Assembly: GCF_052425735.1 (NCBI RefSeq)
Contig: NC_135771.1
Span: 4,526,001-4,590,000, forward strand
Length of the DNA stretch: 64,000 nucleotides
Direction: 5' to 3'
Source: Oculina patagonica
Lineage: Eukaryota
Shown piece after piece: positions 551-63,828 of the stretch (position 1 is its first letter; each line of letters opens with the position of its first letter). Below the pieces are notes generated by a model, which worked only from the letters and a program-made list of their open reading frames with translations, did not search any database and had not been told where the DNA came from. The translations under genes were made by a program, and so were the position numbers.

Positions 551-754
551 CTTAAAACGCGTGCTTTGACCAGATCCGTATCTTCGGATTCTCATTCGGT
601 TTCCAAGAGGCGCACGTGACTTCTGGACAACACGTGGACTGGTCCTACGCCATGGTCCGTTGCACATGTCAATAGTGACCACGTCATTGTTCTCACGGAT
701 AGCCACACCACAGTTACACACCACTCGCCAGCAAGGCCAGATACGTGCATGCAC
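551..754 (-). CDS. VWD domain exon (VWDE-type)
   Basis: 204 nt; VHARIWPCWRVVCNCGVAIRENNDVVTIDMCNG, matching the VWDE-type FEVH.R.W.C..CNCG..E..D.V..DMCNG pattern. Confidence 0.88.
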
Positions 755-3700
755 CTAAACAGGAACACACTGGGTTAAAGACATTTTTTTCTTCAAGAAA
801 TAAATGATTTAATGTAGATTGTGAGTAATCACCTCCCAGCTTCCGATAAAACAAAACTTCCTGTCATCCGGGATAATGCTTTATGGGGTTTTAGCATGAA
901 AGAGAGGCCAGCGTGAATTTAACCCTCTTTCGCTGATGTTCTCAACAAGCCGTCTCAGTCAAAGTAACACACACATACTTTAACAGAAAGTTGTGATTTT
1001 CGATGTTCACTAAGTGCAAACGCCGCAACATTATCTCACAAAAGACTTTCCTTAAAACGTCATTACCCAGACCTATACTCTCATAGGCAATAGTTCTCGG
1101 TCCGTATAAGCGGTGCGCAAGAATTCTGCCAGTAAAGTTAAAAAAAGAGTAACCGTACCTCGAAGTTCCTCCTCAAACTCTTTACCATAACGTAAGTTCC
1201 AGCGTTCCTCAAAATGTCGTAATACCTAAGATAAGGACAGCACACAGTTGAATCAGTAACTAGTTATACAGAGAAAACAGTATTTACAAGTATTGTCCAT
1301 CAGTTTTGTCCATAATTTTCGAAAGTTTGTATTGTCCATTTCCATTGTCCATCAATTTCCTAAAGCTTTTTTATACTTTTGTATTGAGTTTTTTACCTGA
1401 CATTTAATTTTGGACTGTTTTGAGAGGTAAATGGTTAAAATCAAGATTGACTTACTTGTTATCAAACGTTCGATAATGTGGATCTCCAGTTCCTTGACAT
1501 TTCTTGGCACCCCTGTTGGACGTTACGACCTAGAAATCAAATCAAAAATTGTTTGGATGAACACGATGCACACATAAAAATGCTTTTTTCATTGTTGTTG
1601 TTAGTATAAATGTAAAAAAGGCACGGTAGAAGGAAATTGAGTCATTCTTAAGCCCCTGGCCAGCGGGGGTTACTAAGTCACTGGATGTCAGCAGCTTGCA
1701 TGTAGTTCTATAAAAAGGTCATCTAACTTCCACCATAACTATCACGAGAATAATTTAACCTGAAATAAGCCCCCCAACTATTTGCCCGAATTGTAAAACC
1801 CTTTTCTGTAGGGTTTGTGTGGTGCTTTATGCCATCACAGTATGTTCATAGACTTTTGATGTCCGTTTCAAGACTGCAGAACAGAACTTGCTTTTTTTAG
1901 AATCATTATGTTATGTTTTTAAGAGTTTTGATTTTCGGCTTTTGATAACCAGTTACGGCGCCCAGTATTCTTTATTCAGGCGCAAACAACCTTCCAAATT
2001 TAAGGTCAATTATTTATGAAAAGCAAAATGCCACACCAAAACTTAAGGTATTGGTTTTTTTTTTTTTTTTTGGGTTTTTTATTTTTTTTACATGTTAAAT
2101 CAATTACTTACCCTGATTGGGGGAAGTCTATATCCCTTCCAAAATCCACAGAGCCCAGGTGTGGACCTTATAGGACTGAAGTGAACTCGGATATTTTGTC
2201 TTCTCAGCTTCCTGAAATCTCGCACAGGTTTAACATAAAATCCATAATTCTTCCTATTTCTTTCTGTCAGCGTCATTCGGCACCTGTCAGTCACGAAACG
2301 CGTGTGAGATTGAAGCTTTACAATAACAGCACATCTCCTGCGACCGTGACATCTGATTGGAAGGAAACTGCGTAGTTTGATTAGTTTCCAACCCGACGCG
2401 TCCGTCATTGAAAGCGTCTTAGGGTGAACCTGCAAAAAATAATACAAGTGAATTAGAGAGATGAAAAATTAATTTCTTCATCGAATCACACAGCACAGAT
2501 ATAACTCGCATGTTGATTTGCTATCGAAGCGAGGAATTCTATTTCGACACCAGTCCTACTCACTAGTGAGTCACGTAAAACATGCGCAAGCAACTCGAGC
2601 GGTCGGTGTTATTTTTCGACAATGGGGAATAAAAACGACAGATTTGCCAAGGAGGTGGAGGACGACCTACTCAAAGACGATCAAGATCCGTTGTGTTGTT
2701 TGTTTACGCTACGCATCATGAAAAGAAACCAAAGGAATTAGTCTCAGTAAGAATTTTTTTTAAAAAAACTGTTGAACGTAACAAGAAAATAGGATTACTA
2801 TCAAAGGGAAACAAGGATAAAATTTCATGATAAAAATAAAAAACGTTACTCTGGTTAAAAATTGTTATAAAATGTTCGTAAAATGTCCGAAATGTCCCAA
2901 CGTTTCGGCTTAAACTTAAGTCTTCATCAGGGGAAAGTGATAAGTGAATTTACAAAAATAAATATTTATTTCTTAAGATATGCGATTCCAGGAAACTCAC
3001 TCAAATAACCGATTTCGTGTAATGCCGTATGGTGCGATATCGGTTTGCGTGAAATTCACTCCCTGTGCAATGAAATTTCTTGTATCAGTACACAGTCAAG
3101 TAGACACTAGTATGTAGAAAATTACTAAGGAAATTTATTTCAAGCTAAGTATTGAAAGGTGCGATTTAGACATTACCTTGATGCCTGTGAAAAGGTCTTT
3201 ACTTCTCGTGTTCATCGTCCAATCCTTTCCACTGGAATATCTTGCCCTTACTCGGCATGCGACCTTCAAGAATCCAATGCAAAAGCATTACATTGTTATT
3301 TAGATTACAAGACGAGAAGAAATGATTAGCCAGTAAGAAGTTATTTATCACTGTGCAGGGTTGGGCAAAATATCGTTCTTTGTCATTGTTCTTCCAACTG
3401 AGCTTTGAGGCCACGCATCAGAAGAAGGGCAATTCAGTGCGAGTTCTTATTTTCCGTGAAATAATAGAATTGTACTAGAATTGATAATCGTGACAATAAA
3501 CGAAATTTATTTGAAGCCTTGGTGAAGCACACAGCTGGGCGAAACAAGAATTCATATTTGAACTGCAAAAAGATGTAAAGAGAAGAAATGATCCTTGCAG
3601 AAAAATTGCAATTTAAAAAATTACATAGAAAGAAGCCTGAAAAAATTCAGGCTTCAATGGTAGGATTTGAACACGCGACCTACGCGATACCGTTGCGATG

Positions 3701-6700
3701 GCTCTACCAAACGAGCTATGAAGCCACACATTGGGAGAAAGGACCCATTAGTTAAATGTTCTAGTCTAAATCAAAAGGCCAAGTAAATCTACAAACCGTT
3801 GTTCCAGCTTTGAAGCCATACGTGTTCTCCAACAGCTCAGCATGAGTTCCACGTACAGTTTCAGTTTTAGTCACTCTCTTGTTCACAATCCATTGCACAC
3901 GTGCTATAAATCGACTCTTTCTTCTTCCCCGGATGTTAAAGTAGCAGCGGAGCGCAACCTTGGAGCAGCCACGGCCAGGTTTAATGACAGCACGGACGAC
4001 AGGTCGGGAAATCACAGGATAATCTGACACATGTCAATCAATCAATCAATCAAATAATNNNNNNNNNNNNNNNNNNNNNNNNNNNNNNNNNNNNNNNNNN
4101 NNNNNNNNNNNNNNNNNNNNNNNNNNNNNNNNNNNNNNNNNNNNNNNNNNNNNNNNNNNNNNNNNNNNNNNNNNNNNNNNNNNNNNNNNNNNNNNNNNNN
4201 ATTAAAATGAATCAGCTTATTAATTATGATGAAATATCTATGCGTTTAAAAAAGCCGGCTACGTCGTAAATAGTGAATCTTGCAGGATTAAAATCGACCA
4301 CTTCGTTTTTATTGAGTTGAGCTTTTCCGTTAAGTCTTTTCATCCTCACCTGCGCGACAACCATACACCTCAACTCTCATAGATATATGAGCGTGCCAAG
4401 ATCTGGGGTTAAACCTTACAAAGCGTCCGTTAACAGCTGGGTCGATTGGTTGTTCTACCAGTGAGAACCTGTCAAAGTTGCCTCGGAAGAGCTGAATATT
4501 AAAAACAACAATTCTTTGTAAGTCATGACATACATAAAATTAAGATGTTTTAACAAGCCTACCCCGAAAATAACCCTCCGCCACGTCATTTCAAAAAGAC
4601 CCAAAAACGCGTCAAACATACCGCCGCCAGCACCAATAAAAGCCCAGTACATGTATTCAGACTTGCACCTGAAATTTTTCAGACACAAATTCCCTTTCAA
4701 AGTTAAGTACACCCGTTTTTCGAAACGCAAAATTCATTCCAGTAATAACACTCACAAAAAGCCTTTCGAAAACAAGCGCAATAAAAAGAAAAAATCACCC
4801 GAGGGTTTTGACGTATATTCAGAATTTGACAGTGCGTTTGATGACACTCTTGCAAACTTTGAGCCTTACGATTCAATATTTTACAAAAATAACACTCTAT
4901 TTCACAAACCTTAATCTTTCCTCCTTCCTTGATTGGCAAGAAAGTCCTTCCATTCTGACTGTAGTACAGATAGTAGTTCCTGACAAATTGGTTTGCATCG
5001 TACCTCCCCTGAGTGGTGACTTTTGTTATCCTGGTGGGTCCCCTAAGGTCGATCTGTAGCCATTGGTTACGGTCATTACGTCTTGCACACCACGCGCCCA
5101 CGAGACGACCTACACGTCTGTAAATGTCATAACAAAGATTATTTTAACTTAGCATTCAACTATAATTTAAGATCATAGCAAAACCTATCTTGAAACTCAC
5201 GTACCTTTTGGTACCTTGTCAAGAACCTTGCGTTTTTTGTCAGAAATTGATTTTTAAAATACAGACTTCAAAACGATTGCCCAAAATTCTTTAAACTTAA
5301 ATTATGATTTGTAGCTTTTTTCTCGCTTTGTTCCATTCCCTGGCAGCTCAAATATAAAGTCCAGTGTGTATCGACGTCCTTAAAAATGCAAGTCCAACTG
5401 TTTCTTTATAGATGCAAGGGCGTTAAAACTATTTCCCTCGAGCGTGAAGCAAAAAGAACGGATTTTCCACGGCCAATTTTCAACTCGCGCTCTTTCTCTA
5501 TTCGCTTCACCCTCGGGACTAAGAAAAGAGGGACTGCTCGCAGTTCAAGGGAAGTGACAGGCAAAGAGCTTACTTGTTGTTGAGCCGAGCCCGAGTTGGA
5601 TTATGGTTTTTGTCCCACTGTGAAGAAGCTCTGATAGCATGGTTTGGAATACGGCCACTTTGCATTCCAAGAGGTTGGAAGCACATACGGAACATAGCTA
5701 ACAAAGATACAACAAATACACAAGAATAAATCAGTTTAGGCACAAATCATTGATCGAACTTTTATGAAGCAACTAAAGAGGCAAGAATAAGTAAAAAATT
5801 AAAAAAATGGTGCCCTTTTTACGTAGCCTGATGCACAAATCTGATCGATTCTACCATTGCTTTTTGTTCGCTGATAGAACACAATTATGCGCGCGTTTTT
5901 CTTAGAAGGGAAAATTGTTCTTTTTTTTTGGCTTAAAAATACGTAAAATTGTAGCTTTTGGACTGCAATCCTTTATAGTGTCTACTATAACCATGAGGCT
6001 TCTCTCCCGAGGTTTCTTTGAGCAAAAGTTAAATCGGCTGCATGCGCTTCGTTGACTATTCGCTCATAGAAAACTCGGGCTCGCAGTCAAGTTGTTAAAT
6101 AAAATAAAGCCAACAAAGTGCACTGACACGTCAAAACAGTGCTTTCAAAGCCTCATGCAAAACGACTGCACGACCAATCAGTGCGCGGGTTACACGGTCG
6201 ACATTTTATAAACGTGAACAGCAATACTTTCAGACGTTCACGGGAAAGCACTCTTTGTAAGTGAAATAAACAATTTCACCTTTAATGAGAACAATATGTT
6301 TTGATGTTTGTTTGGTTTTTCTTACCTTTATTGCAGCCATAGAGTTCTACTCGCATAGAGATATGACTACGCCACTGTTTGGGATATACACGAACGTAGC
6401 GAGCTTGGAAACTGGGGAAGAGGCGATTATAAACAACAGTGTTCCTATCGCTGTTACCAGGGAACATCTAAGAAGGGAAAAAACACAATCAATTAATCAA
6501 TCAGTCAGTCAGTCGGTCATTCAGTCAGTCAGTCAGTCGGTAAGTCAGTCAGTCAATCAGTCAGTCAATCAGTCAGTCAGTCAGTCAGTCAATCAGTCAG
6601 TCAGTCAGTCAGTCACTCAGGTCAGTCAGTCAGTCAGTCAACAAAACAAAACAGAAAAAATCAAATCAAATCAGGGGTAACATATCTTTGAACGATGAAT

Positions 6701-9700
6701 TCCCCACCCCCCCTAACACGGAGGAAAGCGTGTGAGATCGACAGAAAAAAAATCGATACTGATGACGTTGCTCTACAAAGGACCATGAAGAGTCTCTGAT
6801 TGGTTGTTGATTGGTTTCCAAGACACTGAACGGTATGAAATTTTACTGGTCGCATGGAGAGAACTAAGTTTAGGCAGAAAGCTCAAACAGGATGTTCAGA
6901 AAGCAATTTGGCCACTTACGAAGCAATACATGACCAAGAAAAGGGTTCTTACTTCAAAGTGTAACAAAAAGCATGCAGTTCCTACCTTAACTTTTCTGTT
7001 GATGGCGTAGAACTTGAACTTATTGCCATACAAGCCGTAGCTAATCTCGTATTTCTTCACCCATTGGTTGGCATCGTATCGACCTTGCGTTGCCACAGCA
7101 ACAACCCTTGTCACCTGACCAAGGTTTATCTGAAGCCACTGGAATACGTTGTTATATTTCGATGACCAGGCACCAGTGCCTCCGCGGTTGAGGATATTTA
7201 ATCGGGCTCTGTACGGACCATGTCGCCAATCCCACATGGATGATGACGTCATGGAGTACTTTGGAATACGCCCATCTTCAAGACCCAATGGAGCCCCGCA
7301 TGCACCTGTAGAGGAATAAATATACATTACGATTTCTGCTTTCCTTCATGCTAAGGGCTGCTTCACAAACAGTCAGCCCAAGCTTACAGTTTGAACTTCA
7401 TGTAGCCGTCATGGCGATTGTATTTATAGATTTTGTATGAGAATTTCACTTCAGTTCTCGAAATGCTAAATACAACAATGAGTGTGGAAATAAACTTCAC
7501 TTACCTCAATGTGGGGTTGTTTTTTGTGTCTTCTGTGTAATACAGGGTAATCTAGGGCCATTTGAGGCGAGTTTTTTATTTGGTCACTCTTCGGTGTAGT
7601 TTCCTCTAAGAGATCGTGTAGTTCCTAGAGAAAACTACACTGAAGAGTAACGAAATCAAAAACTCATTTCGGAACTGAAGTGAAATTCCCATACAATGGC
7701 TATAAATACAATCGCCTTGACGGCTACATGAAGTTCAAATATTGCAAGCTTGGGCTGCCTGTGGTTCACACGAGCGATGTGAACCACAGAAAAAGTACGT
7801 GTGAACTAGGACAACGTAATCGCTTTAAGTAAGTAAGTCACAGTCACAAACAAAGACATTTTCACACAAAGACAAACAAAGACATTTTCACACAGCAGTA
7901 AAGAAACGCCAACTTTCGTTACCTAGAGCACAGCCAAAGACCTCGACTCGCATGGAGATGTGACTTCTCCAGCCCCACGGGTGGAACCGAAGGAAGCGAG
8001 CTCGAATAGACGGGATGATTGAATTGTAAACTATAGTGTGTCTGTCACGGTTGCCACGGAAATACTGTAAATAAAAAGTCAAATGTCGTTAAAAAAAAAA
8101 CACAAGCTAAAAACAACTTAGGGAACAGGTTACTGATAACAAGATTCCAATCCCACAAAATTGGTTCTAAATTGTTTACATCTATCCCCACAAAAGTGCC
8201 AAAAGTGATATGAAACATGCACTCAAGATAGAGATGGTGACACACAGACTTCAGAATGTGGGTCTGATATGATGCATTAATATATACCGTAGAATTCCGG
8301 TTATAAGCCCTGGGCTTAAACAACTTCGTAAGGGTTTTTGGGTGGGCTTATAAGCGGAGGGGCTTATATTCGGGAGGGCTTATAAGCGGAAGGAAAAAAA
8401 CGTTTCGAAACGAGCCTCGGGAGTGTTGATCGAAATACGTTTTTAAGTTAAAAACGCACAAAAAAGCAACATTTAGCCCTGTTCAGTACTGTCATCCGGT
8501 AGAGGGGGGCTTATATCCGGGGGGGCTTATAACCGGATGTATTTTTTTGTTTCCAAGATGATGGGCCTATAACCGGGGGGGCTTTTAAGCGGGGGGGCTT
8601 ATAACCGGAATTTTACGGTATATGTCTTTCGTGCATAACAGACATAAAAAAACAGGATCGGACGATATGTCAAGTAAATAATCTGTCATGTAATTCAGTA
8701 ACTACTGTTTTATTAGTCACTTCGGGCAAAAGATATATCCTTCATTTACCTTTAGAGCGAGGGTAAGACTCAGAGAACATACCGAAAAATTGATGTGATG
8801 CTTCCCCCCCCCCCCCTATATATTTGAATTCTCATGCTCATAGCATTGTGCTCACTATATAAATCAAACGGTAATCTGAGTGGTCTTACTATCAAAAATA
8901 AATTTCTCACCTTGTCTCTGGAGTTCTTCCTGTATCTAGCAAAGTGTACTCCATCCACACTGGATGATAGGTAGTATGTGGTCACCCATTGGCTAGCCAT
9001 AGCTCTACCCTGGGTACCAACTCGTATTATCTTCGATATTCGGCCAAGGTCTAGTTGCAGCCATTGATAACGATTGTTGTGCCTATGAATTAAGTTGAGA
9101 AAATGTTATATAAAGATTGTTTTTTAAGAATTACTTTTATAATAAAAACGTTGAGGCTGACATTGGCTTATAAGTTTATACTAAAGTTTTAAATAAGGCT
9201 GAGAACGCGTCGGGCATCTCTGTGTTTCTTGCTTCTCGTGAAGACAAAGTAACCGACATTCTTGTATGACATATGCTTCTTAGTACAGCTTACAAGGCTC
9301 TTCGATATATTTCATGGTCTATCCGAATTCGCCTTACTAAAATGCTATACTACCTTAAGAACGTTTTCAGGTTCAACTTTCTTTAATAAAACGGGGGAGA
9401 GAGGTCCGTGTAACGGCATCTTAATCGTGTTCTGTGCCCTGAGAGATTTTCCCCGAATGCAAAGATCAATTTTGTTTACAAGGAAAAAACAATAAAAGGC
9501 TTGTATAACCTGGCTGACCAAGCGCTTTGGTATCTGCCCATGCGTCGTGCATTAAGCCTGGCTAAATATGGACCATGATATTTATCCCACATGGATGACG
9601 CTGTGATGGCCGAGTTTTTAATGCCTCCCGTCATCATGCCAAGTGGTCGATTGCACATATGTCCTGCAAAAATAAAATCATCAGTAAACATGATGATTCA

Positions 9701-53800: not shown

Positions 53801-56800
53801 GAAATTCGAGGTGTTTGGATAGCTGATAAACACTGTCTCGGGTGTTTGATATACGGGGTATCTTCTCAATCGAAACAAAAACTACGGAGTAAACAGAGAA
53901 ATAAAATCGTAAAAAAATGTCCTAATTAAGACCGGGTATCCAAACCTTCTTCACAGTACGTACCATTGAAAAAATATTTTAGATCGGTCCTTGTAAACCA
54001 TTGGAGCTCTTGCAGTCTAACATGTTGGATCATGTTTTAATGACAAATCAGATATATAGACAGAAGCTTCTAACAATTTTTGGAAAAACAGCTATTGTTA
54101 ACATAAAGATTTTAATAGTGCAGCTTACAAGCCTAAAACTATTGTCCATTTAACACTAACCAGCTCTGCATCCATAGATTTCCACTCTCATTGAGATATG
54201 ACTTCGCCATCCCCACGGGTGAATTTTGATAAACCGAGCATAAACTGCAGGATTAAGAGCTTGGATTTTGATGCTGTTTTGATCATTGTTGCCACGGAAA
54301 GTCTGAAAAGAAATCATTCCACATGAATCATACATGTAAATACTTGCAACTCAGAGCACAACATTAATGAAAAAAATTGCTTCTGTGTTACAGGTTTCTA
54401 CAGTTCTTTCTCGTTTCCATGTTAAAATCCAAATTCATTTTTTTTCATGTTTCTCTTAAAACCTACGTAAAACCTTTCATCTGATTTTTATTTAGCAAAA
54501 AACCTTTATCGCCGTTCTTGATGCACCTCAGGAAAAATAGACGAACGCACAAAAAAACACCCTTGAAACCACGCATGCACAAAACCACACCCTACTCTAG
54601 TCATAATGTAGCCCTTGATTATTTCACTTGGAAATATCCAACTTCCATGGTCGCTATTCTTTGCAAGGTTCTGTATTTATCACATTTTCTCACCTTGTCA
54701 CTGTTTTTGAATCGATACACTTGCCAATGAATGCCATCTAAACTTGAGGATACTCGATAGTATGTCACCCACTGAGCAGCGTCCTGTCTCCCCTGAGTGG
54801 CTATCTTTGTGATTTTCATTGCTCGACCGAAGTCCATCTTAAGCCACTGATTTTTGTTGTTGTGCCTTGCGCACCAGGCTCCAACATATCTACCTCTCTT
54901 GTGGTGACCCAGTCTCCCAAGTCTAGCCGCATGGTAAACGTTGTATTCTGAGGATGCCGTGATTCTGTTGTTTCGGAGACGACCATTTTGTAATCCCAAG
55001 GGAGTGCTGCACAGTGCACCTGGAAAAACAATATCAATATCATTAACTTTTTAACTCTTTTTATTACTGTTGGCAGACATTGGTCGTTTTCACACTAGAA
55101 GACAGACAAATCGTCTCGACGGACGAGTCGTCTGACGATTTGTTCGTCTAGTGTGAATTTAAGACGGATTTTGGACGACTTGTCCCTCTCGATCACCAAG
55201 TCGTCCTCAAAAAATAGTCATCCTAGACGGACAAATCGACGGACAAATTCAGACGACTTGAACATCTAAAAACGTGTCCGACCCGTTTTCATACAAAGTT
55301 GATTTGTCCGTCTCAGACGATATGTCTGTCTAGACGATTTGTCCGTCTCCAGTATGAAAACGGCCATTAAGCCTATACCAACAAAAAAGCAAATTTGTAT
55401 TGTGCCATTTCAACTTGTTAATGATTGCAGATTTGTAATGATTGCCAAATTGAGGTAGCTGGGATGGCCCATTGGTCATGTTGAATTCCACATTCAATCA
55501 GCCAAGAGTGTTCAGAGTCATTTAGCACAATGTGAGGTTCCAGAAAAAATCCATACCCACACCACAGTGACTTACTGGAAATTCCTTTGGGGAGGGGGTC
55601 TCAAAAGCCAAAACGTTTAAAGGAAAGTATGAAACTAAACTGGAATTTCCAGTGGAGTGAGGGAGGGGAAGGGTGGGATCGACAATCGTATTTAGGGCAA
55701 TCTTTTATTTTTGCACATTTGGTTAGCTCACTAAGGCTACCGACGGCTTTCTTCCAAAAGGAATTAAAAACTAAGAAACTTACTTGTACAGCCAAAGAGT
55801 TCAACTCTCATTGAAATCCAACCGTACCATGTTCTTGGATGGATTCTGACATAAGCAGCACTGAATGGCTTCAAGAAACGGTGATATACTACAGAATGTC
55901 TGTCACTGTTTCCTGAGAAAACCTACCACGGAAAAATAATAATCTGTCATTAATATTGTAAGCTAATATAAAAAAAATTATAGTATGGTTAATGTTTAGA
56001 CTTGTTCTAGCCAGTGTGAATTTTAAAATAAATAGATGAATGAGACAAACTATATACAAACCTAAACCTTAACATTGTTACAATATCTGTATCTCGAAAA
56101 GGTCTTTTTGACAGAAGACAAGCGAAACGTTTTAGAAACAACACAACACTTTTAAGGAAGACTATTTAATAGTCATTATCAGTCCAAGAAAAACAACAAT
56201 TTTAACGTGTTTAAACGTGCCGTTTCACCATGTTGATTTAAAACTCTTTAAAGTACTCACAATGACATAGTTATGCACTCTTTTGCTGCCTTGTCACAAA
56301 TTAGCAACGTAATTCTAAGTTTATTTTATTTATAGTCATTTGAAATTCAACTTATTAATATATTTCGTAACTGACTTCTCACAGTAGGGACTGTCGAACC
56401 ATGTCTTTTTCAAAACTCAAAAGAGATGTGTTGTGTTGTTTCAAACCCTTTACAGCAAATATTGCATGTAAGTGACAGAGCAATTTGATACGAATTCTCG
56501 TATGACAACTGCTGCCCTTTAAAAGCATGAGAAAGTACTGGTGAATAGTTTCAAATCTGCTAACCAAACGATGCTCATATCATAGTAGTTAGAATATTCA
56601 TTAGCCTATACTTATTAATTAACAATTGCATTCAAAGTCTTGTCCAGAAGACAACCTTGTACCCACGCCAAAATCAGCTACTTAAAAAACGCGTTTTTAC
56701 GCAACACTCTAGTTATTACGTGTAAAGATTTATCATACTCTTACCTTGATGCGTCGGTTTTCTCTGTAGGGAACGTAGCTTACACCATCTCGACTATATG

Positions 56801-59800
56801 TCACTATATAGGTCTTCACCCATTGGTTGGCATCTTGTCGGCCTTGTGTTGCTATTCCTTTAAATTTTGTTATATCACCGAAATTAACCTTGAGCCACTG
56901 TTTGGTATTTCTAGTGCGTACACTCCAGGACCAGCGGTGGTTCAATCTGCCATGCCATGGTGAAAGGTGGTGGTTGTAGTAGGTAGAGGCTGTTATATCT
57001 CCTGGAGTGAGACGCTTGTCTTCTAAACCAAGAGGCATGTTGCAACGGTCTGCAAAGTAAGATGAACAAAATGCAATGAACAAGTAGTAAAAGTTAAGAC
57101 TAAAGGAAAATTTACAAAGAACCAGAGAAGGGACATCCTGGGTACCAGAGGATTTTTCTCGCACGCAGCGGATTACTCTTCAGCGGCCGACATGACCGAC
57201 ACCAGAAGCTGTGCAAGAAAAACCTTTGTCACCAAGGGTAGAGAAGGGAAGAAAGGAACAAACAAATGGACAAACAAATAAGCCTGCCTCTCCAGAAAGG
57301 GGTGAAAGGAGGGACGGAGGGAATCAGGAAAACATTTCATTTAAACTAGAATGACTAACGTAGAATAAGTTTGGGGACTATCATTAAGAACCAAGATTAT
57401 TATTAAAATAGTGGTATTATTAATGGTTGTATGAGAAAAACATCAAGGCCAACGATGGCAACCAATAATAATGTGATTAAACCTGGGAAACAGTATTGAT
57501 AGTCATGTCTAGATAAATAAAGTAAAAAAAAATTATTCACACCTTCAACGCATCCATAGAACTCCACTCTCATAGAGATGTGTTTATACCATCCCCAAGG
57601 TCGAACCTGAATAAACCGTGCCTTGATTGGTGGATAGAACCTGTGCTGTACCACTGTGTTTTGGTCTCGGTTACCTTGGAAGTACTAAATAAAAAGAAAC
57701 AACGAAAATTATAAAGGACACATAGCTAACTTCAGAAACATTATTTATCAGGAATCCTTGACCATAATGAGAAGGAACATTCCGGTTGGTCCAAATTTTG
57801 CAATATCGTAAGCTTAGGTGAACCACGCCCAAAATAGCTTAGCTGACCCAGTTTGGGTTTTTTGAAGCATTTTGCAAAAGAAAGCAAACTTCATAATAAG
57901 TGGAAGCGTTTTTTTCACATGTCTGGCCAATGATTTTGGTTTAACATCTGGGAAAGAAGCTTCAACTTCACGATGCTCAACACAGCTATGCAAATTTGCA
58001 GATAATAGATGCCTTATGTATCAGCAAAGTTATATTGTAGAAGAGCCCTTAATTGCAAAATGAATTTGAACACAACGAATTTTTCCCCGATACAAAACAC
58101 ACACTAGCACAATACAACATCTACATATAAAGGTAAATACAACAAACGTACCTTTCTATTGCTGTTTTCTTTATACTCAGCGAAATTTGCACCATCTTGA
58201 CCGTATTTAACGAAAAACCGTGTCACCCACTGACGTGCGTCTTGTCTTCCTTGAATAGCAATCTTCACTACACGCATGGAGCGTCTGAAGTCCACTTGTA
58301 ACCACTGGTAGTGATTATTGTGGCGTGATGACCACGCCCCAGTCCTCGCGCGGCTTCTACGCCAATACAGTCTGGCATTACTTGGTCCATGATTTCGATC
58401 CCACATGGAAGATGCTGTGATTTGATTGGCACGAACGCGGCCATTTTTCATTCCTAAGGCTTTGTCGCATCTTGGGCCTATTGTGGGAAGAAAAGGCATG
58501 TGTGAGTATTGTAACTAAACTTAGAAAGTTATAGAAATATATATTTAGATACAAGCAGTTTATTGAAGTTCATTTTAGAATCAAAATTAATACAAAAACA
58601 AGAAAAGGATAAAAGAAAAGAATTCATAGCTTAATTGATTAGCTTTGCTGATCTTGATCACCACTATTTAAACATGAAACCTGTGACATTATTAACCCCC
58701 TATCTAGTCTTTCTTAGTTGTGTGATTGCGCGCATAAAGGCAAGAAAGATAAACAAATTTAAGAAATTGACACTTATGATTACATTATATATACATAAAC
58801 CTACCAATGACGCAACCATAGAGCTCAACTCTCATGGAGATCCAGCTACGCCAGGTGACAGGATGTATCTTGAAGTAACGACCCGCCAGTGGTCGCATAA
58901 ATCGGTGCCTTACGACTACATATCTGTCAAAGTTACCTTGGAAAATCTGGGAGATAAAAAAATAGACCATAAATCCACAAGTTTTACTCCTTTCTTATTT
59001 CAAGCCTCAAAGTATAATAATTGATAAACCCCCTTCTCTATTATCAGCACATAAAACAGCCTCCACTGAAAATTATATAAACCCCCTGGCTGTCCCTACA
59101 ACCCTCTCTAACAAAATCAAAAGTGAAAGAAAAAAAAGTAAAACATGTTTTGTAAAAACTTATTCTAAAATACGCTTAGTCTGGTCTTCTTAACCAGTCC
59201 AGAGTTTGAAATATAAACTCTTCTTGCTGCCTTTTTACTTACAATTTTATTGCTATACACTTTTTTATGTAAATTTTGAGAATTTGGTGAAAAATCAAGA
59301 TGAAAATCCCTCCTTGTGACCTGTCTCCTTGGATGGAAGTAACGTTTTTAACTTACATTTGTCTTAGAGCGGTTTTTACTTGAGTGTGGAAAGTAATTCG
59401 CATTTGCTTTGGTTTTGCATAACTACGCTTAGTGATTGGTTTAAAAAAAACTTGCGCCACTTTCGCAGCCAATCGAAAGTATAACCAAAAGCAATTGTGA
59501 TTCGCGTGCGCCCTTTTCCCGCGTATTTGCTTGGAGTTTTGATTGATTAATTCGATTGTCTGTATTCTTTGTGATTGGCCTGAGTGATAACTTTGGTTTT
59601 GGTTTTACGACACTCAATCGAAAATCGCGCTATATCCTTTTCCAGAACACTAACTAACCTTTGTTCTTCTGTACTCCTTATAGGTCACAAACCGGAATCC
59701 CTTGACACTATAAGATACATAGTAACTTGTGACCCACTGGTCGGCGTTCTGTCGACCTTGAGTAGCAACTCGTGACACACGAGTAAGCCCTCCAAAGTCA

Positions 59801-62800
59801 ATCTTGAGCCACTGGCGTTTGTCATTTCGTTTCGCATACCACGCCCCTCCAAGCCTACCCACACGTCGCTGGTGGAGCCTGGCGTTTCTTGGTGCACCGT
59901 AGAAGTTGTAATATGAGGAAGCCGTGATGAGTTGGGCAGGGACACGGCCATCTTCCAATCCAAGAGGAACGTCACACCTACCTTTATTAAAGAAATGAAA
60001 ATCAGTTAAGTGGACATCAAGGAATATAAAGAAATTCTCCACTTAATGAGAACAATAATTTATTGGACAATTTTTGAAGACCAGATTTATAGGAGATTAA
60101 CTTCAGCATGTTCAAGTAGTTGAACTTCATGTAAACAGCAATCTGACCATCCGAAAAAGATGTTACATGTACCTCAACCAGATTGCAGTTTCTACGAAAA
60201 CAATTAGACAACGAGCCTTTGCTTTCTATAAACGATAATGAACTCGGCTTCGCCTCGTTAACTATTCGCTCAAAGAAAATTCGGATTCGTACTCTTGTTC
60301 TCAATAAATAGCGCACATTAAGGTCTTTTTACTTACTCCATGCGCCAGCAAACAGCTCAAGTCTCATTGAGATATGTGAACGCCAGCCACGTGGGACGAT
60401 TTTAACGAATCGTGCATACAAGGGAGGGTTGAATGAGCGAGTTTGAACACCATTTCGATCGTAATTTCCTTTGAAAGTCTAAATACAGTACAACAAAAAG
60501 GAAAACAAACAACAGTCAAACAAATAAAAGAGAGTATAGAAAAGTAAAACAAGTTTACGTTTCCCTAAAAATTTACCTGACTTGCAAGATTAATTATCAT
60601 TTCTGCAACCATTTCAATCTAGTCAAAAATCTAATCATCCTTACTTGCCCATGACTTTCAAAATTTGTGCTTTTATAATGTTACACAACAGAAAAGTGCC
60701 AGAACTGGTTACAAGTGCTATGACCGACGTGTATACCTTCCTCATTGTACTGCAATAAGCTCTTTGCAGAACATGGTCATGGGACAAGGGGTAGTGCAAA
60801 ATGATTCCCAGAAACACAAAGAGCACGATGAAATAAGTAAGGTTGCCCTTTTCGAGACTGCTGATGCTTAAACGTTAGATTTTATAGTAGTTTAAAGGCT
60901 TTAAAAGTTTAAAGGATTTGTATGGAAAGAGTTGCTTGATGGCAAGGCTTGCCCTCCAGTATACAAATCCTCAAATTTCAAAAACATTCAAACCACTATA
61001 AAACCTCACACTTACGCATCAGCAGTCTCAAAATTAGCAACCTTTAATTTCATCATGTTCTTTTCATTTTTGGCAACCATTTTGTCCTACCGCATACTTT
61101 TATAATTGACAAGATCACGTGATCGGTTTTCTGCAAAGGGCCTATTACCCCCAAAATCATCTGCTTTGAGGAGAACACTGCCTTTGTATGAAATGCACAG
61201 CTGTAAATTTCGTTTTACGATTTGACATATTTTATTACTGTCAACCAAAATGAACACAAAAAACACTTACCCTGATGTAATCCCACCAATATGTGACTCT
61301 AGAATAGTGAACTCCATCTAAACTGTAGTAAACATAATAGGCAGTCACCCATTGGTCTGCATCTTGCCGTCCTTGTGTTGCGATACCTGTGACCTTGGAT
61401 GACCTTCCTAAGTCAATCTTCAACCACTGGTTGTGGTTGTTATGGCGGGAAGCCCATGAGCCGATGTAACGACCCTGCTTTGCAATATGCAATCGGGCAC
61501 GGAATGGAGCATGGAATTTGTCCCATTGGGATGAGGCGGTCATGGCAGCATTCTTAATTTTACCACTTTGAATACCTTGGACTTGGTCACAGAATCGTTC
61601 TAAGGAGAGAATTGAAAAGGATATTGCATTTCACAAATCGCTGCTTTTTGTCTTTAGACTACAGGGCTTTCATTAAGATTTTAGTGTAGAGCAAAGAGCA
61701 ATAAAAGAAACTGACATTATCTCCCCTTCACAGGAGCTGCACGAACGTTATCCGGCAAATCACGAGAGGATACCCGCCGGAGCTCTGGTGGGTGCCGGGT
61801 CTTACTGAAAGCCCTAGAGACAAAATAACTTACTAGAAACATTTTTCAGCGTGAACTTTAACCGCTGCAAAAGCCTTACAACCAACATTTGACTTTTTTA
61901 ATTTTAAGGCTAGTTGCAAATGTAACTATTGCATTTCATAGATTTTAGCGACTTATTTTTAGCATAATTATCATTTTTCAAGTTTTTAATTCTGGGTGTA
62001 ACATTTAAAGTGGGTGGGTTAAAGTGGGTTAAAAATTTTTTACTCATAAGATATTGTAATCTAGCTATTTTTATGTAATCTAGCTATTTTACAATATCTA
62101 GATATTGTAATCTAGCTATTTTACATGCTTGAGTGAAATAATTGATCGTCAAGAAATCCCGCTCGCAAATTGTACTGTGATAATTACATAATACACCCAA
62201 ATTTGTCTGAGTTGAGTAACACAAATAGAATTTAGCCGGAAACATCGTCGATTTCGTTTTAAACGCGTTACTTTTTTTAATTTTCATGTAATTTCATTGA
62301 GCTTACCTTTATACCGACAACCGTACAATTCTACTCGCATGGCAATATAACTGCGCCAAGTCTTGGGATGGATACGTAGAAAACGGGCCTTGATTGCTGG
62401 GATTATCTTGAAAGAAACTGTGTTGTAGATATCGTAGTTACCACGGAAAACCTAACAAAAAAGGAAATCATGGTAAAACCGAGTTATTCAGTTTTCAAGC
62501 ACGCACAAGCACATCTAAACATATATGCAGGTCCTGATTGCAAAGAACTTTCAGAAAAAAAATCAAAACTGGGGCTTCAGTGGGATTGAAACGCATGACC
62601 TGTGTGATATACTAGTGTAGTGTTCTACTGTAACTACCTTGAATAATAAAGCAAGTTCATTTTAAGTAATTTTCACTTTTGTGCCGAAAGTAGTTCGCGT
62701 TTGGTTTAGTTTTGCATTACTACGCTTAGTAATAGCATAGTTAATGGATGGTAAGAGAAACCTGCGCTGCTTTCTTAACCATTCAGAAGTAAAACTAAAA

Positions 62801-63828
62801 CCAATCAGTGTTTTCCCGCGCTTCATGCCGGCATATTTTGCTTCAAGTTTTGATTGGTTCAGTGGACTGTCCGTGTCCTTCATGATTGGCAAAAAATGAT
62901 TACTTTGGTTAGAGTTTTACAACACTGGATTGAAAACCGCTCTATGTAAACACAATAACTATAAACTGGTGATAATGTAAACGTTTCATTTTCATATCAC
63001 CAAGCATGCTGCAGTACCAGAAAGAAAAGCTGACAAACCAACAAGTACACCGTGTGTGGAAAAAACAGACAATCGGTTTTAAACAACTCTAAACAGCATC
63101 TCACCTTAATCCTGCCATAAGCTACATATGGTCTAAAGCGCAGACCCTTCGCGCTATAGGACAGGGTATAACTTTTCACCCATTGATGGGCTTCTCTCCG
63201 TCCTTGTGTAGCGATTCCTTTGATGATACTCATCTGCCTCAAGTCAATCTGTAGCCACTGCCTGTTGTTTCGATATTTTGCTACCCAGGCCCCTGTTCGT
63301 CCATGGCCGGCGTAGATGTTAAGACGTGCTCGGTCAGGTCCGTGATTGTAGTTATAAGAAGACGAGGCTCGTAGATGACCCGACAGGATACGACGGTCTT
63401 CCATACCAAGCGGCATAGTACATTTGTCTGTAAAAGCAAACATCCAATATTGATTTTAGGCGTGCAAACCAAATGTCAAATTTGAATTGACATTTTTAAA
63501 ACCTTTTTTAGAACAAATGTTAATACAAAGGTGATAGAAAAAATGATTATAAGAAAAATCTAAGCAAAGAATCTGAATTTAAAACAAACTTTCCCAAGGA
63601 TGCACATGAAAAGAATGATAATGCTAATGATGAGATGTTTGGGGGTTTTAATGCTTGTCACAAAAGTTACTCTCTTTGCTTTGTACCTGTTAGGCAACCA
63701 TAGAATTCTAATCTCATGGAGATATGTCTGTACCATCCCCATGGACGAACGCGGACGTAGCGACATCTGAGGGCAGGGATGAAAGGATGACTGACAACTG
63801 TATTCTGGTCTCGGTTGCCTGAGAAATA
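551..63828 (-). CDS. Partial giant multi-exon gene: >=35 tandem discoidin (F5/8 type C) domains followed by a VWDE-like Ig-like + VWD module; 5' and 3' ends outside window
   Basis: 80 exons with GT/AG boundaries and compatible phases. Repeated motifs C..PLG..DGR/NGRI..ASS..ARL..GAW..QWLQ.D..TQGR..QWV..Y.SYS.DG and F.GN.D..ARF.R.HP..W..HISMRVE.YGC. No start or stop exon seen between modules. Confidence 0.9.
1159..1225 (-). CDS. VWD domain exon
   Basis: 67 nt, phase 2-0; YYDILRNAGTYVMVKSLRRNFE. Confidence 0.85.
1456..1529 (-). CDS. Start of von Willebrand D domain
   Basis: 74 nt; VVTSNRGAKKCQGTGDPHYRTFDN, matching the VWD signature C...GDPHY.TFD. Confidence 0.9.
2112..2429 (-). CDS. VWDE-like region, exon 3
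   Basis: 318 nt; VHPKTLSM...LPIRC...PVRDF...FWKGYRLPPIR. Confidence 0.85.
2895..2934 (-). ncRNA. Minimal hammerhead-ribozyme-like motif (Penelope-type remnant)
   Basis: TCCC-CTGATGA-A-GACTTAAGTTTAAGCC-GAAACGTT-GGGA. Confidence 0.55.
3177..3263 (-). CDS. VWDE-like region, exon 2
   Basis: 87 nt, phase 0-0; VACRVRARYSSGKDWTMNTRSKDLFTGIK (resembles the VWDE S..FFAGIK segment). Confidence 0.8.
3633..3737 (-). mobile_element. tRNA-derived SINE head fragment
   Basis: Reverse-strand tRNA-like A/B-box sequence; related fragment at about 62555-62630. Confidence 0.5.
3797..4023 (-). CDS. VWDE-like region, exon 1
   Basis: 227 nt, phase 1-0; DYPVISRPVVRAVIKPGRGCSKVALRCYF...GFKAGTT. Confidence 0.8.
4059..4200. 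other. Assembly gap
   Basis: 142 Ns, preceded by (TCAA)n. Confidence 0.99.
4350..5697 (-). CDS. Discoidin D35 (last of the array, extra intron)
   Basis: Exons 5574-5697, 4910-5117, 4350-4491. Confidence 0.9.
6326..7305 (-). CDS. Discoidin D34
   Basis: Exons 6986-7305 and 6326-6467. Confidence 0.9.
6487..6640. repeat. (CAGT/CAAT)n microsatellite
   Basis: Tetranucleotide tandem repeat. Confidence 0.95.
7370..7761. mobile_element. Foldback MITE
   Basis: TIRs of about 60 bp (CAG.CAGCCCAAGCTT..TTTGAACTTCATGTAGCCGTCA.GGCGATTGTATTTATA) plus an internal hairpin. Confidence 0.75.
7923..9663 (-). CDS. Discoidin D33 (type 8-like, extra intron)
   Basis: Exons 9510-9663, 8911-9082, 7923-8064. Confidence 0.9.
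8287..8618. mobile_element. Tc1/mariner-like MITE
   Basis: TIRs CCGTA.AATTCCGGTTATAAGCCC, TA flanks, internal GGGCTTATA repeats. Confidence 0.8.
10073..11444 (-). CDS. Discoidin D32 (type 7-like, apparent +1 frameshift)
   Basis: Exons 11121-11444 (324 nt; 323 expected) and 10073-10214. Confidence 0.82.
10506..10752. mobile_element. MITE with 9-bp TSD (Mutator-like TSD size)
   Basis: TIRs containing GTTAGTGGGGGCGAAACGAAG; TSD AACCTCCTC at 10497-10505 and 10753-10761. Confidence 0.8.
10795..10965. mobile_element. CAGTCAAC-ended mariner-like MITE family
   Basis: TIR CAGTCAACT...AGTTGACTG, internal GTGTCCGTCTTA repeats; relatives at 24257-24339, 25531-25702, 28946-29121, 35312-35440. Confidence 0.75.
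11972..13158 (-). CDS. Discoidin D31 (position 6 of the unit)
   Basis: Exons 12827-13158 and 11972-12113. Confidence 0.9.
12471..12745 (-). mobile_element. tRNA-derived SINE
   Basis: Reverse-strand tRNA-like head (GGTTCGAACC B-box), core GTGTCTTGCCCAAGAACA and GGTACCCATTTATACACCTGGGT tail region. Confidence 0.7.
13427..14543 (-). CDS. Discoidin D30 (type 5-like)
   Basis: Exons 14242-14543 and 13427-13568. Confidence 0.9.
14100..14237. other. Assembly gap
   Basis: 138 Ns. Confidence 0.99.
14655..14695 (-). ncRNA. Second minimal hammerhead-like motif (degenerate)
   Basis: ACC-CTGATGA-T-GACTTAATTTAAGTC-GAAAAACGTT-CGGGT. Confidence 0.45.
15040..16191 (-). CDS. Discoidin D29 (type 4-like)
   Basis: Exons 15866-16191 and 15040-15181. 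Confidence 0.9.
16239..16515. repeat. Two degenerate copies of an interspersed repeat
   Basis: GTTCA..GGAT..TTATCCACTGGATAAATCGCTAT..GATAGT.ATTTATCCGG present twice. Confidence 0.55.
16697..18098 (-). CDS. Discoidin D28 (type 3-like, extra intron, apparent +1 frameshift)
   Basis: Exons 17919-18098 (180 nt; 179 expected), 17187-17330, 16697-16838. Confidence 0.82.
16922..17228. repeat. Tandem duplication (about 160 bp) including the D28 exon 3' end and donor
   Basis: GATAAGCAAGTGTTAAGTA.TTCGAGA..ACGTTACCTTGATTACTCT..TTTCTGTGTA..AACTAGAGCC present twice. Confidence 0.85.
18513..19628 (-). CDS. Discoidin D27 (type 2-like)
   Basis: Exons 19303-19628 and 18513-18654. Confidence 0.9.
20400..22399 (-). 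CDS. Discoidin D26 (type 1-like, extra intron)
   Basis: Exons 22221-22399, 21159-21302, 20400-20541. Confidence 0.9.
23124..24122 (-). CDS. Discoidin D25 (type 8)
   Basis: Exons 23797-24122 and 23124-23265. Confidence 0.9.
24763..26151 (-). CDS. Discoidin D24 (type 7, extra intron)
   Basis: Exons 26001-26151, 25258-25429, 24763-24904. Confidence 0.9.
25531..25702. mobile_element. CAGTCAAC MITE copy
   Basis: Alignable by eye to 10795-10965; TA flanks. Confidence 0.75.
27029..28667 (-). CDS. Discoidin D23 (divergent type 6)
   Basis: Exons 28360-28667 and 27029-27170. Confidence 0.9.
27495..27746. mobile_element. MITE/foldback
   Basis: TIRs ATCCACCGTA..GAAAAAGATGGC / GCCATCTTTTTCCATACGGTGGAT. 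Confidence 0.65.
27907..28326. mobile_element. Non-autonomous DNA transposon with CCCGGG(G)n ends and 8-bp TSD
   Basis: TSD AACTTCTG at 27899-27906 and 28327-28334; internal inverted ATACGGGGAGGCT motif and AAAGGGGTA repeats. Confidence 0.8.
28946..29121. mobile_element. CAGTCAA-ended MITE
   Basis: TA-CAGTCAA...TTGACTG-TA. Confidence 0.7.
29307..29850. mobile_element. PIF/Harbinger-like MITE
   Basis: Near-perfect TIR of about 45 bp, GGGCCTGTTTACATGATTCCGGAATGACTTTCATTCCGGAACGA. Confidence 0.8.
29891..31424 (-). CDS. Discoidin D22 (type 5)
   Basis: Exons 31135-31424 and 29891-30032. Confidence 0.9.
30928..31050. repeat. Palindromic interspersed repeat
   Basis: AACAGTTATTCCACTCGCGCTTG.TGGATATGA...TCATATCCAACGCGCGTTCGTGTAATAACTGTT. 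Confidence 0.65.
32106..33216 (-). CDS. Discoidin D21 (type 4)
   Basis: Exons 32891-33216 and 32106-32247. Confidence 0.92.
33891..34906 (-). CDS. Discoidin D20 (type 3)
   Basis: Exons 34584-34906 and 33891-34032. Confidence 0.92.
35520..36538 (-). CDS. Discoidin D19 (type 2, WWD)
   Basis: Exons 36210-36538 and 35520-35661. Confidence 0.92.
36801..37641 (-). CDS. Discoidin D18 (type 1)
   Basis: Exons 37319-37641 and 36801-36945. Confidence 0.92.
38054..39539 (-). CDS. Discoidin D17 (type 8)
   Basis: Exons 39214-39539 and 38054-38195. Confidence 0.92.
38367..38708. mobile_element. Kolobok-like MITE
   Basis: TTAA flanks, AG..CT termini, TIR AGATGA.TTCCAGTCCGTACTGCGCA. Confidence 0.75.
40776..41831 (-). 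CDS. Discoidin D16 (type 7)
   Basis: Exons 41509-41831 and 40776-40917. Confidence 0.92.
40993..41171. mobile_element. Kolobok-like MITE
   Basis: TTAA-AGGAGCAATGTCA ... TGACATAGCTCCT-TTAA. Confidence 0.65.
42076..42208. repeat. Hairpin repeat
   Basis: TATTGACCAAGCTTGTTCGGTCAAGATAGCTGGATA ... TATCCAGCCATCTTGACCGAACAAGCTTGGTCGATA. Confidence 0.7.
42299..43232 (-). CDS. Discoidin D15 (type 6)
   Basis: Exons 42907-43232 and 42299-42440. Confidence 0.92.
43437..44468 (-). CDS. Discoidin D14 (type 5)
   Basis: Exons 44164-44468 and 43437-43575. Confidence 0.92.
44982..46029 (-). CDS. Discoidin D13 (type 4)
   Basis: Exons 45704-46029 and 44982-45123. Confidence 0.92.
46667..47641 (-). CDS. Discoidin D12 (type 3)
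   Basis: Exons 47319-47641 and 46667-46808. Confidence 0.92.
48288..49124 (-). CDS. Discoidin D11 (type 2, WWD)
   Basis: Exons 48796-49124 and 48288-48429. Confidence 0.92.
49475..50222 (-). CDS. Discoidin D10 (type 1)
   Basis: Exons 49900-50222 and 49475-49619. Confidence 0.92.
50557..51499 (-). CDS. Discoidin D9 (type 8)
   Basis: Exons 51174-51499 and 50557-50698. Confidence 0.92.
51678..52009. mobile_element. PIF/Harbinger-like MITE
   Basis: TTA TSD; TIR AGGCCTGGCT.AA.TAGGAA. Confidence 0.75.
52393..53494 (-). CDS. Discoidin D8 (type 7)
   Basis: Exons 53172-53494 and 52393-52534. Confidence 0.92.
53708..53950. repeat. Interspersed repeat (inverted relative near 22850-23063)
   Basis: Shared ATTTTTGAC.AA.TTCGAGGTGTTT core. 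Confidence 0.6.
54161..55019 (-). CDS. Discoidin D7 (type 6)
   Basis: Exons 54694-55019 and 54161-54302. Confidence 0.92.
55081..55366. mobile_element. Harbinger-like MITE
   Basis: TIR TGG.CGTTTTCA.ACT.GA.GAC.GACAAATCGTCT. Confidence 0.7.
55784..57049 (-). CDS. Discoidin D6 (type 5)
   Basis: Exons 56745-57049 and 55784-55922. Confidence 0.92.
57543..58477 (-). CDS. Discoidin D5 (type 4)
   Basis: Exons 58152-58477 and 57543-57684. Confidence 0.92.
58805..59981 (-). CDS. Discoidin D4 (type 3)
   Basis: Exons 59659-59981 and 58805-58946. Confidence 0.92.
59365..59632. mobile_element. TAGAGCGGTTTT-ended MITE family
   Basis: Copies also at about 38938-39199, 52876-53127, 62665-62944; shared GAAAGTAATTCGC.TTTGCTTTGGTTTTGCA and GATTGG motifs. 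Confidence 0.75.
60337..61599 (-). CDS. Discoidin D3 (type 2, WWD)
   Basis: Exons 61271-61599 and 60337-60478. Confidence 0.9.
60755..61147. mobile_element. Degenerate foldback element
   Basis: Inverted arms GAGACTGCTGATGC/GCATCAGCAGTCTC, GGATTTGTAT/ATACAAATCC, TTTGCAGAA/TTCTGCAAA. Confidence 0.65.
62307..63427 (-). CDS. Discoidin D2 (type 1)
   Basis: Exons 63105-63427 and 62307-62451; DKCTMPLGMEDRRILSGHLRASS. Confidence 0.92.
63687..63828 (-). CDS. Discoidin D1 (type 8), second exon only
   Basis: 142-nt exon YFSGNRDQNTVVSHPF...HISMRLEFYGCLT. Confidence 0.9.

Follow-up and report, generated by a model that had tools for sequence, protein, structure and literature searches.

A giant chain of arginine-rich discoidin domains with a VWD tail in the coral Oculina patagonica, a candidate polyanion-binding protein

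Proteins built from FA58C (discoidin), VWD and EGF domains recur in the temporary adhesives of attaching animals, cnidarians among them (PMC10057474). The sea-urchin Nectin, an adhesive and cohesive protein of tube feet, has six FA58C domains, a mass of 108 kDa and an isoelectric point (pI) of 5.98 (PMC10057474). The flatworm Mlig-ap1 is a polycationic cohesive protein with VWD and EGF domains, and heparin blocks the adhesion (PMC6410801). Here we analyze a stretch of 64,000 nucleotides (nt) from the coral Oculina patagonica (contig NC_135771.1, positions 4526001–4590000; hereafter, the window). It is the 3′ half, or about half, of one very large minus-strand anthozoan gene, the body of which is a head-to-tail chain of 63 FA58C beta-barrel modules. 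Marine temporary adhesives include both tandem discoidin proteins and Lys/Arg-rich VWD proteins, but we know of no described protein that combines the two features.

Like Nectin, the coral gene encodes head-to-tail discoidin domains, and its product is predicted to be extracellular; the link to adhesion and cohesion is Nectin's. It differs in its 63 domains, ~1.1 MDa mass, pI of 10.8, VWD tail with a candidate EGF module, super-repeat of eight domain types and near lack of N-glycosylation sequons. With Mlig-ap1 it shares very large size, extreme positive charge and a VWD domain, to which a candidate EGF module may be added, the block by heparin being a property of Mlig-ap1. However, Mlig-ap1 has low-complexity Lys/Arg repeats and no discoidin array, whereas the coral charge is mostly arginine carried on folded FA58C barrels, and we found no sequence relationship between the two proteins. 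Sea-star Sfp1 and similar temporary-adhesive proteins use the same FA58C, VWD and EGF toolkit together with lectin modules, yet discoidin domains are few in them and stand beside several other kinds of module, while the coral protein is nearly all discoidin.

In stop-to-stop translations of the minus strand, the same repeated pattern runs along the entire window. To delimit the array, we scanned 284 kb around the window with our own profiles of the two exon types that encode the domain (coordinates are those of the window, and negative values lie below its start). The scan retrieved 75 FA58C modules between 151223 and -24177, all on the minus strand. The main array comprises 63 modules (151223 to 4350) and the 12 remaining modules form a separate downstream array. 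The window holds 34 complete two-exon modules and exon B of one more (Table 1). The feature that the initial annotation described is thus present in the window but not confined to it, as it runs well past both sides.

Each FA58C domain is encoded by an exon A and an exon B. Exon A covers ~106 residues from the opening cysteine, with a phase-1 acceptor before it and a phase 0 end after a Lys/Arg codon. Exon B is nearly always 142 nt long, with a phase 0 start and an end that falls one base past the YGC motif plus two codons. Because of this layout, all domains have phase 1-1 borders, and ~4 residues separate the closing and opening cysteines of neighbouring barrels. We set the module borders by these splice rules, which recover the borders of the last module as verified by RNA. 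An additional intron interrupts exon A in nine modules, and a clean solution was found for each. Under these rules 73 of the 75 modules are stop-free and exact multiples of three.

The assignment to the discoidin fold is supported at several levels. Translations of exon A scored 56–70 bits on the Pfam profile F5_F8_type_C (PF00754; cut-off 28.2), and exon B aligns with positions 84–127 of this profile. The domains start with C..PLG and end with YGC, and 57 of the 61 intact modules contain a minimum of two cysteines, which fits a flanking pair. Along its entire length, a spliced family member from Nematostella (P0075) matched chains of factor V, factor VIII, neuropilin and lactadherin (E = 1e-39 to 1e-17).

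The non-discoidin tail that follows the array is part of the same gene. We examined positions 1–6000 in transcript contigs from four public runs of three studies (runs labelled as guessed RNA). The contigs cover exons only and skip eight intervals, all of which are CT..AC on the plus strand and hence GT-AG on the minus strand. With the cuts placed on the canonical dinucleotides, the nine exons from 5697 to 551 (Table 1) form a single open frame. Transcription and splicing into one frame extend at least from the last FA58C modules through the tail to position 551. One assembly gap lies within the intron from 4023 to 4350; spliced contigs skip this intron in three runs and the frame is unbroken. 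Another gap (14100–14237) starts 4–10 nt past the possible donors of exon 14543–14242 (or 14248), and the domain of module 58 is finished in frame by exon 13568–13427, beyond the gap.

The tail begins with an orphan basic module of ~230 amino acids (aa), followed by a VWD domain with a GDPH motif. Searched by single exons, the orphan module matched nothing in Pfam or the Atlas. An exhaustive HMMER search of 1.84 billion proteins with its largest exon (2112–2429) recovered only 14 relatives, all of them short unnamed fragments. AlphaFold reached a mean predicted local distance difference test score (pLDDT) of 44.6 on this exon with a 12-sequence alignment, and tblastn found no second copy of the tail module in the 284 kb. 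The GDPH motif, a predicted site of autocatalytic cleavage, is in frame in the transcript-verified exon 1456–1529, near the start of the VWD domain. The VWD exons in the window are too short for Pfam scoring alone, and the single tail exons 2103–2468, 509–754, 3764–4033 and 945–1172 gave no Pfam match. The reading of these negative results as the lack of a VWD domain was overturned by the transcript contigs and by a Pfam VWD match just outside the window (PF00094; 27.0 bits against a cut-off of 22.9; profile positions 121–151), in a minus-strand open reading frame (ORF) from -554 to -336. Further on lie a Lys/Pro-rich minus-strand ORF (-1897 to -1367) and an EGF-like minus-strand ORF (-2741 to -2364; EGF_2 24.9 against 22.1, EGF_Teneurin 25.3 against 24.3), both beyond the 1–6000 region covered by the transcript contigs. 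VWDE and gel-forming mucin VWD assemblies likewise show VWD with GDPH and then an EGF-like module, the latter at the ORF level here. In the coral gene, however, the preceding 230 aa have no detectable family, there is one EGF-like ORF, and neither a C8 nor a TIL domain was matched with the VWD tail. The label "VWDE-like" given to the tail by the initial annotation is therefore fair as a description of domains, but does not imply orthology to VWDE.

To assess how far the charge of these domains departs from that of other discoidin domains, we computed their composition. Intact modules have a net charge of +10 to +29 each and a pI of 9.9–11.9. The 32 intact domains in the window (4,913 aa) range from +13 to +24 (mean +18; pI 10.0–11.5) and contain 12.7% R, 4.2% K, 3.2% H, 3.4% D, 1.8% E, 6.4% Y and 3.7% W. 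Together, the 61 intact modules of the main array amount to 9,356 aa and 1,105 kDa, with a net charge of +1,098 and a pI of 10.84. For comparison, we retrieved FA58C fragments from databases with one exon A and trimmed them to the same profile region (~104 aa). The coral exon-A parts contain on average 12.6 R, 5.3 K and 5.3 D+E (net +12.6), against 5.0 R, 5.5 K and 7.6 D+E (net +2.8) in 50 FA58C fragments outside the family, so that their charge is far above that of typical FA58C domains (Mann–Whitney p = 2e-17). The similar charge that the initial annotation had named as grounds for refutation was not observed. Same-family database fragments resemble the window domains (net +11.9). The charge surplus is a gain of arginine and a deficit of acidic residues, and not a gain of lysine. 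Arginine exceeds lysine by ~3:1 despite a genome of 39% G+C.

These numbers bear out the extreme cationic composition and the scarcity of acidic residues that had been noted from the window, both inside and beyond it. The further description of loops packed with Arg, Lys and His holds for arginine, whereas lysine is ordinary, and the claim of an extreme aromatic composition was too strong: Y+W amounts to 10.7 against 8.9 in other FA58C fragments, the difference is due to tyrosine only (~1.6 residues), and tryptophan is equal. All the peptides quoted in support are present on the minus strand: ARLHRTRRGRLMGAW at 36393–36437, RLYWRRSRARTGAW at 58332–58373, LGRLKRVRGGRF at 13019–13054, CHGRRRC at 2331–2351 and RDFRKLRRQ at 2196–2222. 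The last two belong to the tail, which had been described as equally basic, and rightly so, as its transcript-verified 325 aa have 15.4% R, a net charge of +57 and a pI of 11.4.

The modules are of eight types that recur in a fixed order. Identity between modules peaks at a lag of eight (mean 66%, up to 86%, against 42–49% at other lags), and a weaker period of two is also seen. Between lag-8 partners, synonymous sites are saturated (synonymous divergence, dS, of at least 0.9 or undefined) and the median ratio of nonsynonymous to synonymous divergence (dN/dS) is 0.12. A Nematostella scaffold (DS469515.1, ~375–395 kb), found via P0075, carries the same two-exon array with 16 modules in the class order 0–7, 0–7, each with a net charge of +10 to +21. 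The super-repeat and the charge are therefore older than the split of the two hexacoral lineages.

A further shared property is the avoidance of N-x-S/T sequons. The 61 intact modules of the main array contain two, where shuffled sequences predict 60 ± 7. On the same basis none was observed in the downstream array (12 expected), the Nematostella array (15 expected) or the same-family fragments (48 expected), whereas other FA58C fragments contain 30 (54 expected). The conservation of charge, of the eight-domain order and of sequon avoidance in the coral and Nematostella suggests that a physical property, and not individual binding sites, has been under strong selection.

One may ask whether the locus is instead a decaying or mis-assembled repeat array with a composition that serves no function. 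Two one-base frameshifts, two assembly gaps, and the larger number of additional introns and greater divergence in the last two super-repeats would fit such a view. We consider it largely refuted and extremely improbable, because 73 of the 75 modules are open and in frame, the transcripts are spliced, dS is saturated at a dN/dS of ~0.12, Nematostella has the charge, sequon avoidance and domain order in common, and arginine is three times as frequent as lysine at 39% G+C. The same data bear on the idea of a soluble or mucus-bound pattern-recognition agglutinin that traps bacteria or recognises symbionts and is not a glue. Polycations bind anionic microbial envelopes. This general affinity, together with the very large expansion of FA58C in the genome (>2,000 candidate exons), speaks for an agglutinin. 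However, the fixed order of types, the dN/dS of ~0.12 and the conservation in Nematostella are the opposite of what fast-changing immune loops show, and the array is one locus rather than a variable gene family, so that we regard this role as unlikely.

Where the charge sits on the barrel is informative about what the domains may bind. Of the ~27 K/R per domain in a column profile of 73 domains, eight near-invariant framework columns account for 7.6 and 39 variable columns for 15.6. In the alignment with factor VIII C2, the variable K/R columns cluster at the stretch 2211–2227 (R2215, R2220, K2227), which we place, from established structural knowledge, at the end of the barrel that faces the ligand. 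Where factor VIII C2 has its hydrophobic spike (L2251/L2252), the aligned coral domains carry a conserved polar stretch, RQDANQ, and this speaks against insertion into membranes in the manner of clotting factors. The first spike region (M2199/F2200) is 3 residues shorter in the coral domains, so no residue-by-residue mapping is made there. We relied on the alignment with factor VIII C2 because the AlphaFold prediction for Nematostella P0075 (53 sequences; mean pLDDT 53.8) was unusable for charge mapping. The C1–C2 domains of factors V and VIII, lactadherin C2 and neuropilin b1/b2 thus share clear homology with the coral domains, and both groups have basic residues around the ligand end. They differ in charge (net 0 to +10 when hand-counted on alignments, with +6 for factor VIII C2, +10 for factor VIII C1 and 0 for pseutarin C1, where the coral domains have +10 to +29), in having the L2251/L2252 spike where the coral domains have RQDANQ, and in occurring in one or two copies against 63.

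We give roughly even credence to a secreted, multimerising polycation, the arginine-rich barrel ends of which bind and cross-link anionic glycans, polymers or surfaces. Secretion is suggested by the paired cysteines, by the VWD and EGF modules and by the avoidance of sequons, which is sensible only for a protein that transits the endoplasmic reticulum (ER). The protein would be secreted through the ER and kept free of N-glycans. Its VWD end would link molecules to each other or to a partner, and dozens of arginine- and tyrosine-rich barrel ends would bind anionic partners multivalently, the candidates being sulfated or carboxylated glycans, acidic polymers, and anionic lipid or microbial surfaces. 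One molecule could in this way collect polyanions and join them by cross-links into a cohesive gel or glue, as Mlig-ap1 may do, but with the charge on folded lectin-like domains. The reading as an adhesive, mucus-cohesion or polyanion-binding protein had already been put forward in the initial annotation. It has since gained from the transcripts that join the tail to the array, the GDPH motif, the VWD match, the charge and the alignment of the densest K/R columns with factor VIII C2 residues 2211–2227, while the individual roles named there would still be candidates.

Several points weigh against this reading. Seawater ionic strength screens plain charge attraction, so binding would need multivalency and arginine-specific contacts. 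The sequon depletion is judged against shuffles and other families, and related domains are not independent samples. The 5′ end lies ~90 kb beyond the window, and a search for a first exon and signal peptide upstream of 151223 gave weak candidates only. Two modules, 56 (18098–16697) and 60 (11444–10073), are 466 nt long and have one surplus base early in exon A relative to their paralogues, outside any homopolymer (18040–18060 and 11395–11415, respectively), in the most diverged and intron-richest 3′ part of the array. If real, these frameshifts force module skipping or an early end of the protein. Because the downstream modules and the tail are intact and transcribed, either module skipping or an assembly error is likely. 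Lastly, module 25 is split between exon A at 105560–105235 and exon B at 70339–70198. The frame is kept and the eight-type register is unbroken over this 35-kb interval, and the continuity of the gene across it rests on the frame and the repeat register rather than on RNA.

The 35-kb interval itself bears, at ~75899–104416, about nine intronless minus-strand ORFs of 345–420 aa of the rhodopsin-type G-protein-coupled receptor (GPCR) family, one of which scored 132 bits on Pfam 7tm_1. Either this is a GPCR cluster nested in an intron, or the array is broken into two genes. Just upstream of the first FA58C exon are two minus-strand ORFs (152765–153346 and 151857–152045) that had no Pfam match even at E = 10. 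In the Atlas, both lie nearest to clusters of hypothetical cnidarian proteins and of beta-sandwich families that bind sugars (DUF4980, CBM_4_9, DUF642). These ORFs may encode an N-terminal module of the protein.

Two further readings keep the polycation but place it in a particular structure. The protein might be a structural filament of the extracellular matrix or of an egg or embryo coat, in which the eight-domain period sets the assembly with sulfated proteoglycans and the charge serves matrix assembly, not attachment to foreign surfaces. The beads-on-a-string build with four-residue linkers, the conserved super-repeat and the VWD multimerising end would suit such a filament, and the tandem-FA58C protein Nectin is reported as adhesive and cohesive in sea-urchin tube-foot secretions (PMC10057474). 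Set against this, the main text of the paper on the Nematostella mesoglea matrisome mentions FA58C only for Polydom, although this is a weak objection because trypsin would cut an arginine-rich protein into very short peptides. We hold a role as matrix filament to be improbable.

Alternatively, the protein could be a component of cnidocysts (of the adhesive spirocyst, or of the nematocyst matrix or tubule), where the polycation would pair with capsule polyanions or coat a sticky tubule. Cnidocyst capsules contain polyanions such as poly-gamma-glutamate and chondroitin. The family occurs in two hexacoral lineages and all of its nearest Atlas clusters are cnidarian; the extreme positive charge and the predicted absence of N-glycans also speak for this role, and a fixed eight-domain period would suit a regular supramolecular structure. 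Nevertheless, minicollagen-type cysteine-rich or other typical capsule domains were not seen, and nothing specific emerged from literature searches that paired discoidin with spirocytes or the nematocyst proteome. We regard a cnidocyst component as unlikely. More specifically still, the eight-type cycle could act as a molecular ruler, making the protein a megadalton, glycan-free arginine scaffold. Such a scaffold would condense or arrange one particular polyanion, for which poly-gamma-glutamate, chondroitin and a sulfated mucin are candidates, within a hexacoral structure such as the adhesive spirocyst thread or the larval attachment pad. We consider the ruler very unlikely; if true, it would define a new class of folded-domain polycation glue.

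The downstream array of 12 modules, on the same strand within -4894 to -26461, has neither of the flanking cysteines, repeats with a period of four and is more basic still (net +21 to +29, pI ~11.5). It is followed by an ORF with RPP repeats (-24812 to -24549) and by a VWA domain (-25440 to -26461; Pfam 47 and 51 bits), and it may be a separate paralogous gene. A PF00754 search of the 529-Mb assembly gave 2,077 first-look candidates, including a run of >30 near-identical discoidin units at ~1.1 kb spacing on contig 7 (28855099–28892342) and clusters on contigs 4, 12 and 14. The downstream neighbours on the plus strand are an O-methyltransferase at about -30871 to -30260 (Dimerisation domain 78 bits, Methyltransf_2) and a weak 7tm_1 ORF at about -36755 to -35715. 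Within the window, positions 1–400, 2839–2949, 3601–3800, 5800–6000 and 62900–62945 show very high summed contig depth (up to ~5,600) or dozens of genome copies at 85–89% identity, and are presumably dispersed repeats within introns.

Table 1. Features in the window. Modules were delimited by a hidden Markov model profile scan and splice rules unless stated otherwise; class is the type within the eight-type cycle.
Feature	Span	Strand	Exon A	Exon B	Remarks
Module 29 (class 4), exon B	63687-63828	-	64407-64732	63687-63828	Exon A outside window
Module 30 (class 5)	62307-63427	-	63105-63427	62307-62451	
Module 31 (class 6)	60337-61599	-	61271-61599	60337-60478	
Module 32 (class 7)	58805-59981	-	59659-59981	58805-58946	Also Pfam match
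Module 33 (class 0)	57543-58477	-	58152-58477	57543-57684	Contains RLYWRRSRARTGAW
Module 34 (class 1)	55784-57049	-	56745-57049	55784-55922	Short type
Module 35 (class 2)	54161-55019	-	54694-55019	54161-54302	
Module 36 (class 3)	52393-53494	-	53172-53494	52393-52534	
Module 37 (class 4)	50557-51499	-	51174-51499	50557-50698	
Module 38 (class 5)	49475-50222	-	49900-50222	49475-49619	
Module 39 (class 6)	48288-49124	-	48805-49124	48288-48429	
Module 40 (class 7)	46667-47641	-	47319-47641	46667-46808	
Module 41 (class 0)	44982-46029	-	45704-46029	44982-45123	
Module 42 (class 1)	43437-44468	-	44164-44468	43437-43575	
Module 43 (class 2)	42299-43232	-	42907-43232	42299-42440	
Module 44 (class 3)	40776-41831	-	41509-41831	40776-40917	
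Module 45 (class 4)	38054-39539	-	39214-39539	38054-38195	
Module 46 (class 5)	36801-37641	-	37319-37641	36801-36945	
Module 47 (class 6)	35520-36538	-	36210-36538	35520-35661	Contains ARLHRTRRGRLMGAW; also Pfam match
Module 48 (class 7)	33891-34906	-	34584-34906	33891-34032	
Module 49 (class 0)	32106-33216	-	32891-33216	32106-32247	
Module 50 (class 1)	29891-31424	-	31135-31424	29891-30032	5 aa shorter
Module 51 (class 2)	27029-28667	-	28360-28667	27029-27170	
Module 52 (class 3)	24763-26151	-	26001-26151 + 25258-25429	24763-24904	Exon A split
Module 53 (class 4)	23124-24122	-	23797-24122	23124-23265	
Module 54 (class 5)	20400-22399	-	22221-22399 + 21159-21302	20400-20541	Exon A split
Module 55 (class 6)	18513-19628	-	19303-19628	18513-18654	
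Module 56 (class 7)	16697-18098	-	17919-18098 + 17187-17330	16697-16838	Exon A split; extra base near 18055, 466 nt, out of frame
Module 57 (class 0)	15040-16191	-	15866-16191	15040-15181	
Module 58 (class 1)	13427-14543	-	14242-14543	13427-13568	Alternative donor 14248; intron holds gap 14100-14237
Module 59 (class 2)	11972-13158	-	12827-13158	11972-12113	Contains LGRLKRVRGGRF; also Pfam match
Module 60 (class 3)	10073-11444	-	11121-11444	10073-10214	Extra base near 11400, 466 nt, out of frame
Module 61 (class 4)	7923-9663	-	9510-9663 + 8911-9082	7923-8064	Exon A split
Module 62 (class 5)	6326-7305	-	6986-7305	6326-6467	
Module 63 (class 6), last	4350-5697	-			Exons 5574-5697, 4910-5117, 4350-4491; spliced in transcript contigs, ORF
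Assembly gap	4059-4200	.			In intron between 4350-4491 and 3797-4023; transcript joint
Orphan basic module, exon 1	3797-4023	-			Transcript joints; without Pfam match
Orphan basic module, exon 2	3177-3263	-			Transcript joints
Orphan basic module, exon 3	2112-2429	-			Transcript joints; contains CHGRRRC and RDFRKLRRQ
VWD domain start	1456-1529	-			Transcript joints; GDPH motif 1476-1487
VWD exon	1159-1225	-			Transcript joints
VWD exon	551-754	-			Transcript joints; domain runs on outside window

Literature searches on FA58C or discoidin with coral, Nematostella, spirocyte, settlement and nematocyst proteome returned no description of this protein. At 17% Lys+Arg, it would largely be missed by standard tryptic proteomics, which may explain the lack of a published description. 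The gene stands apart from the known tandem-discoidin and VWD adhesives through its size, its arginine-based charge (about +1,100 net over 61 folded lectin-like barrels), the conserved cycle of eight domains and the avoidance of sequons, and it ends in a VWD tail that is predicted to multimerise. If polyanion binding is its true function, the gene would be a candidate, tractable via Nematostella, for anthozoan mucus cohesion, for larval or polyp attachment, or for adhesive capsules, and it would offer a natural design for wet adhesives at high salt.

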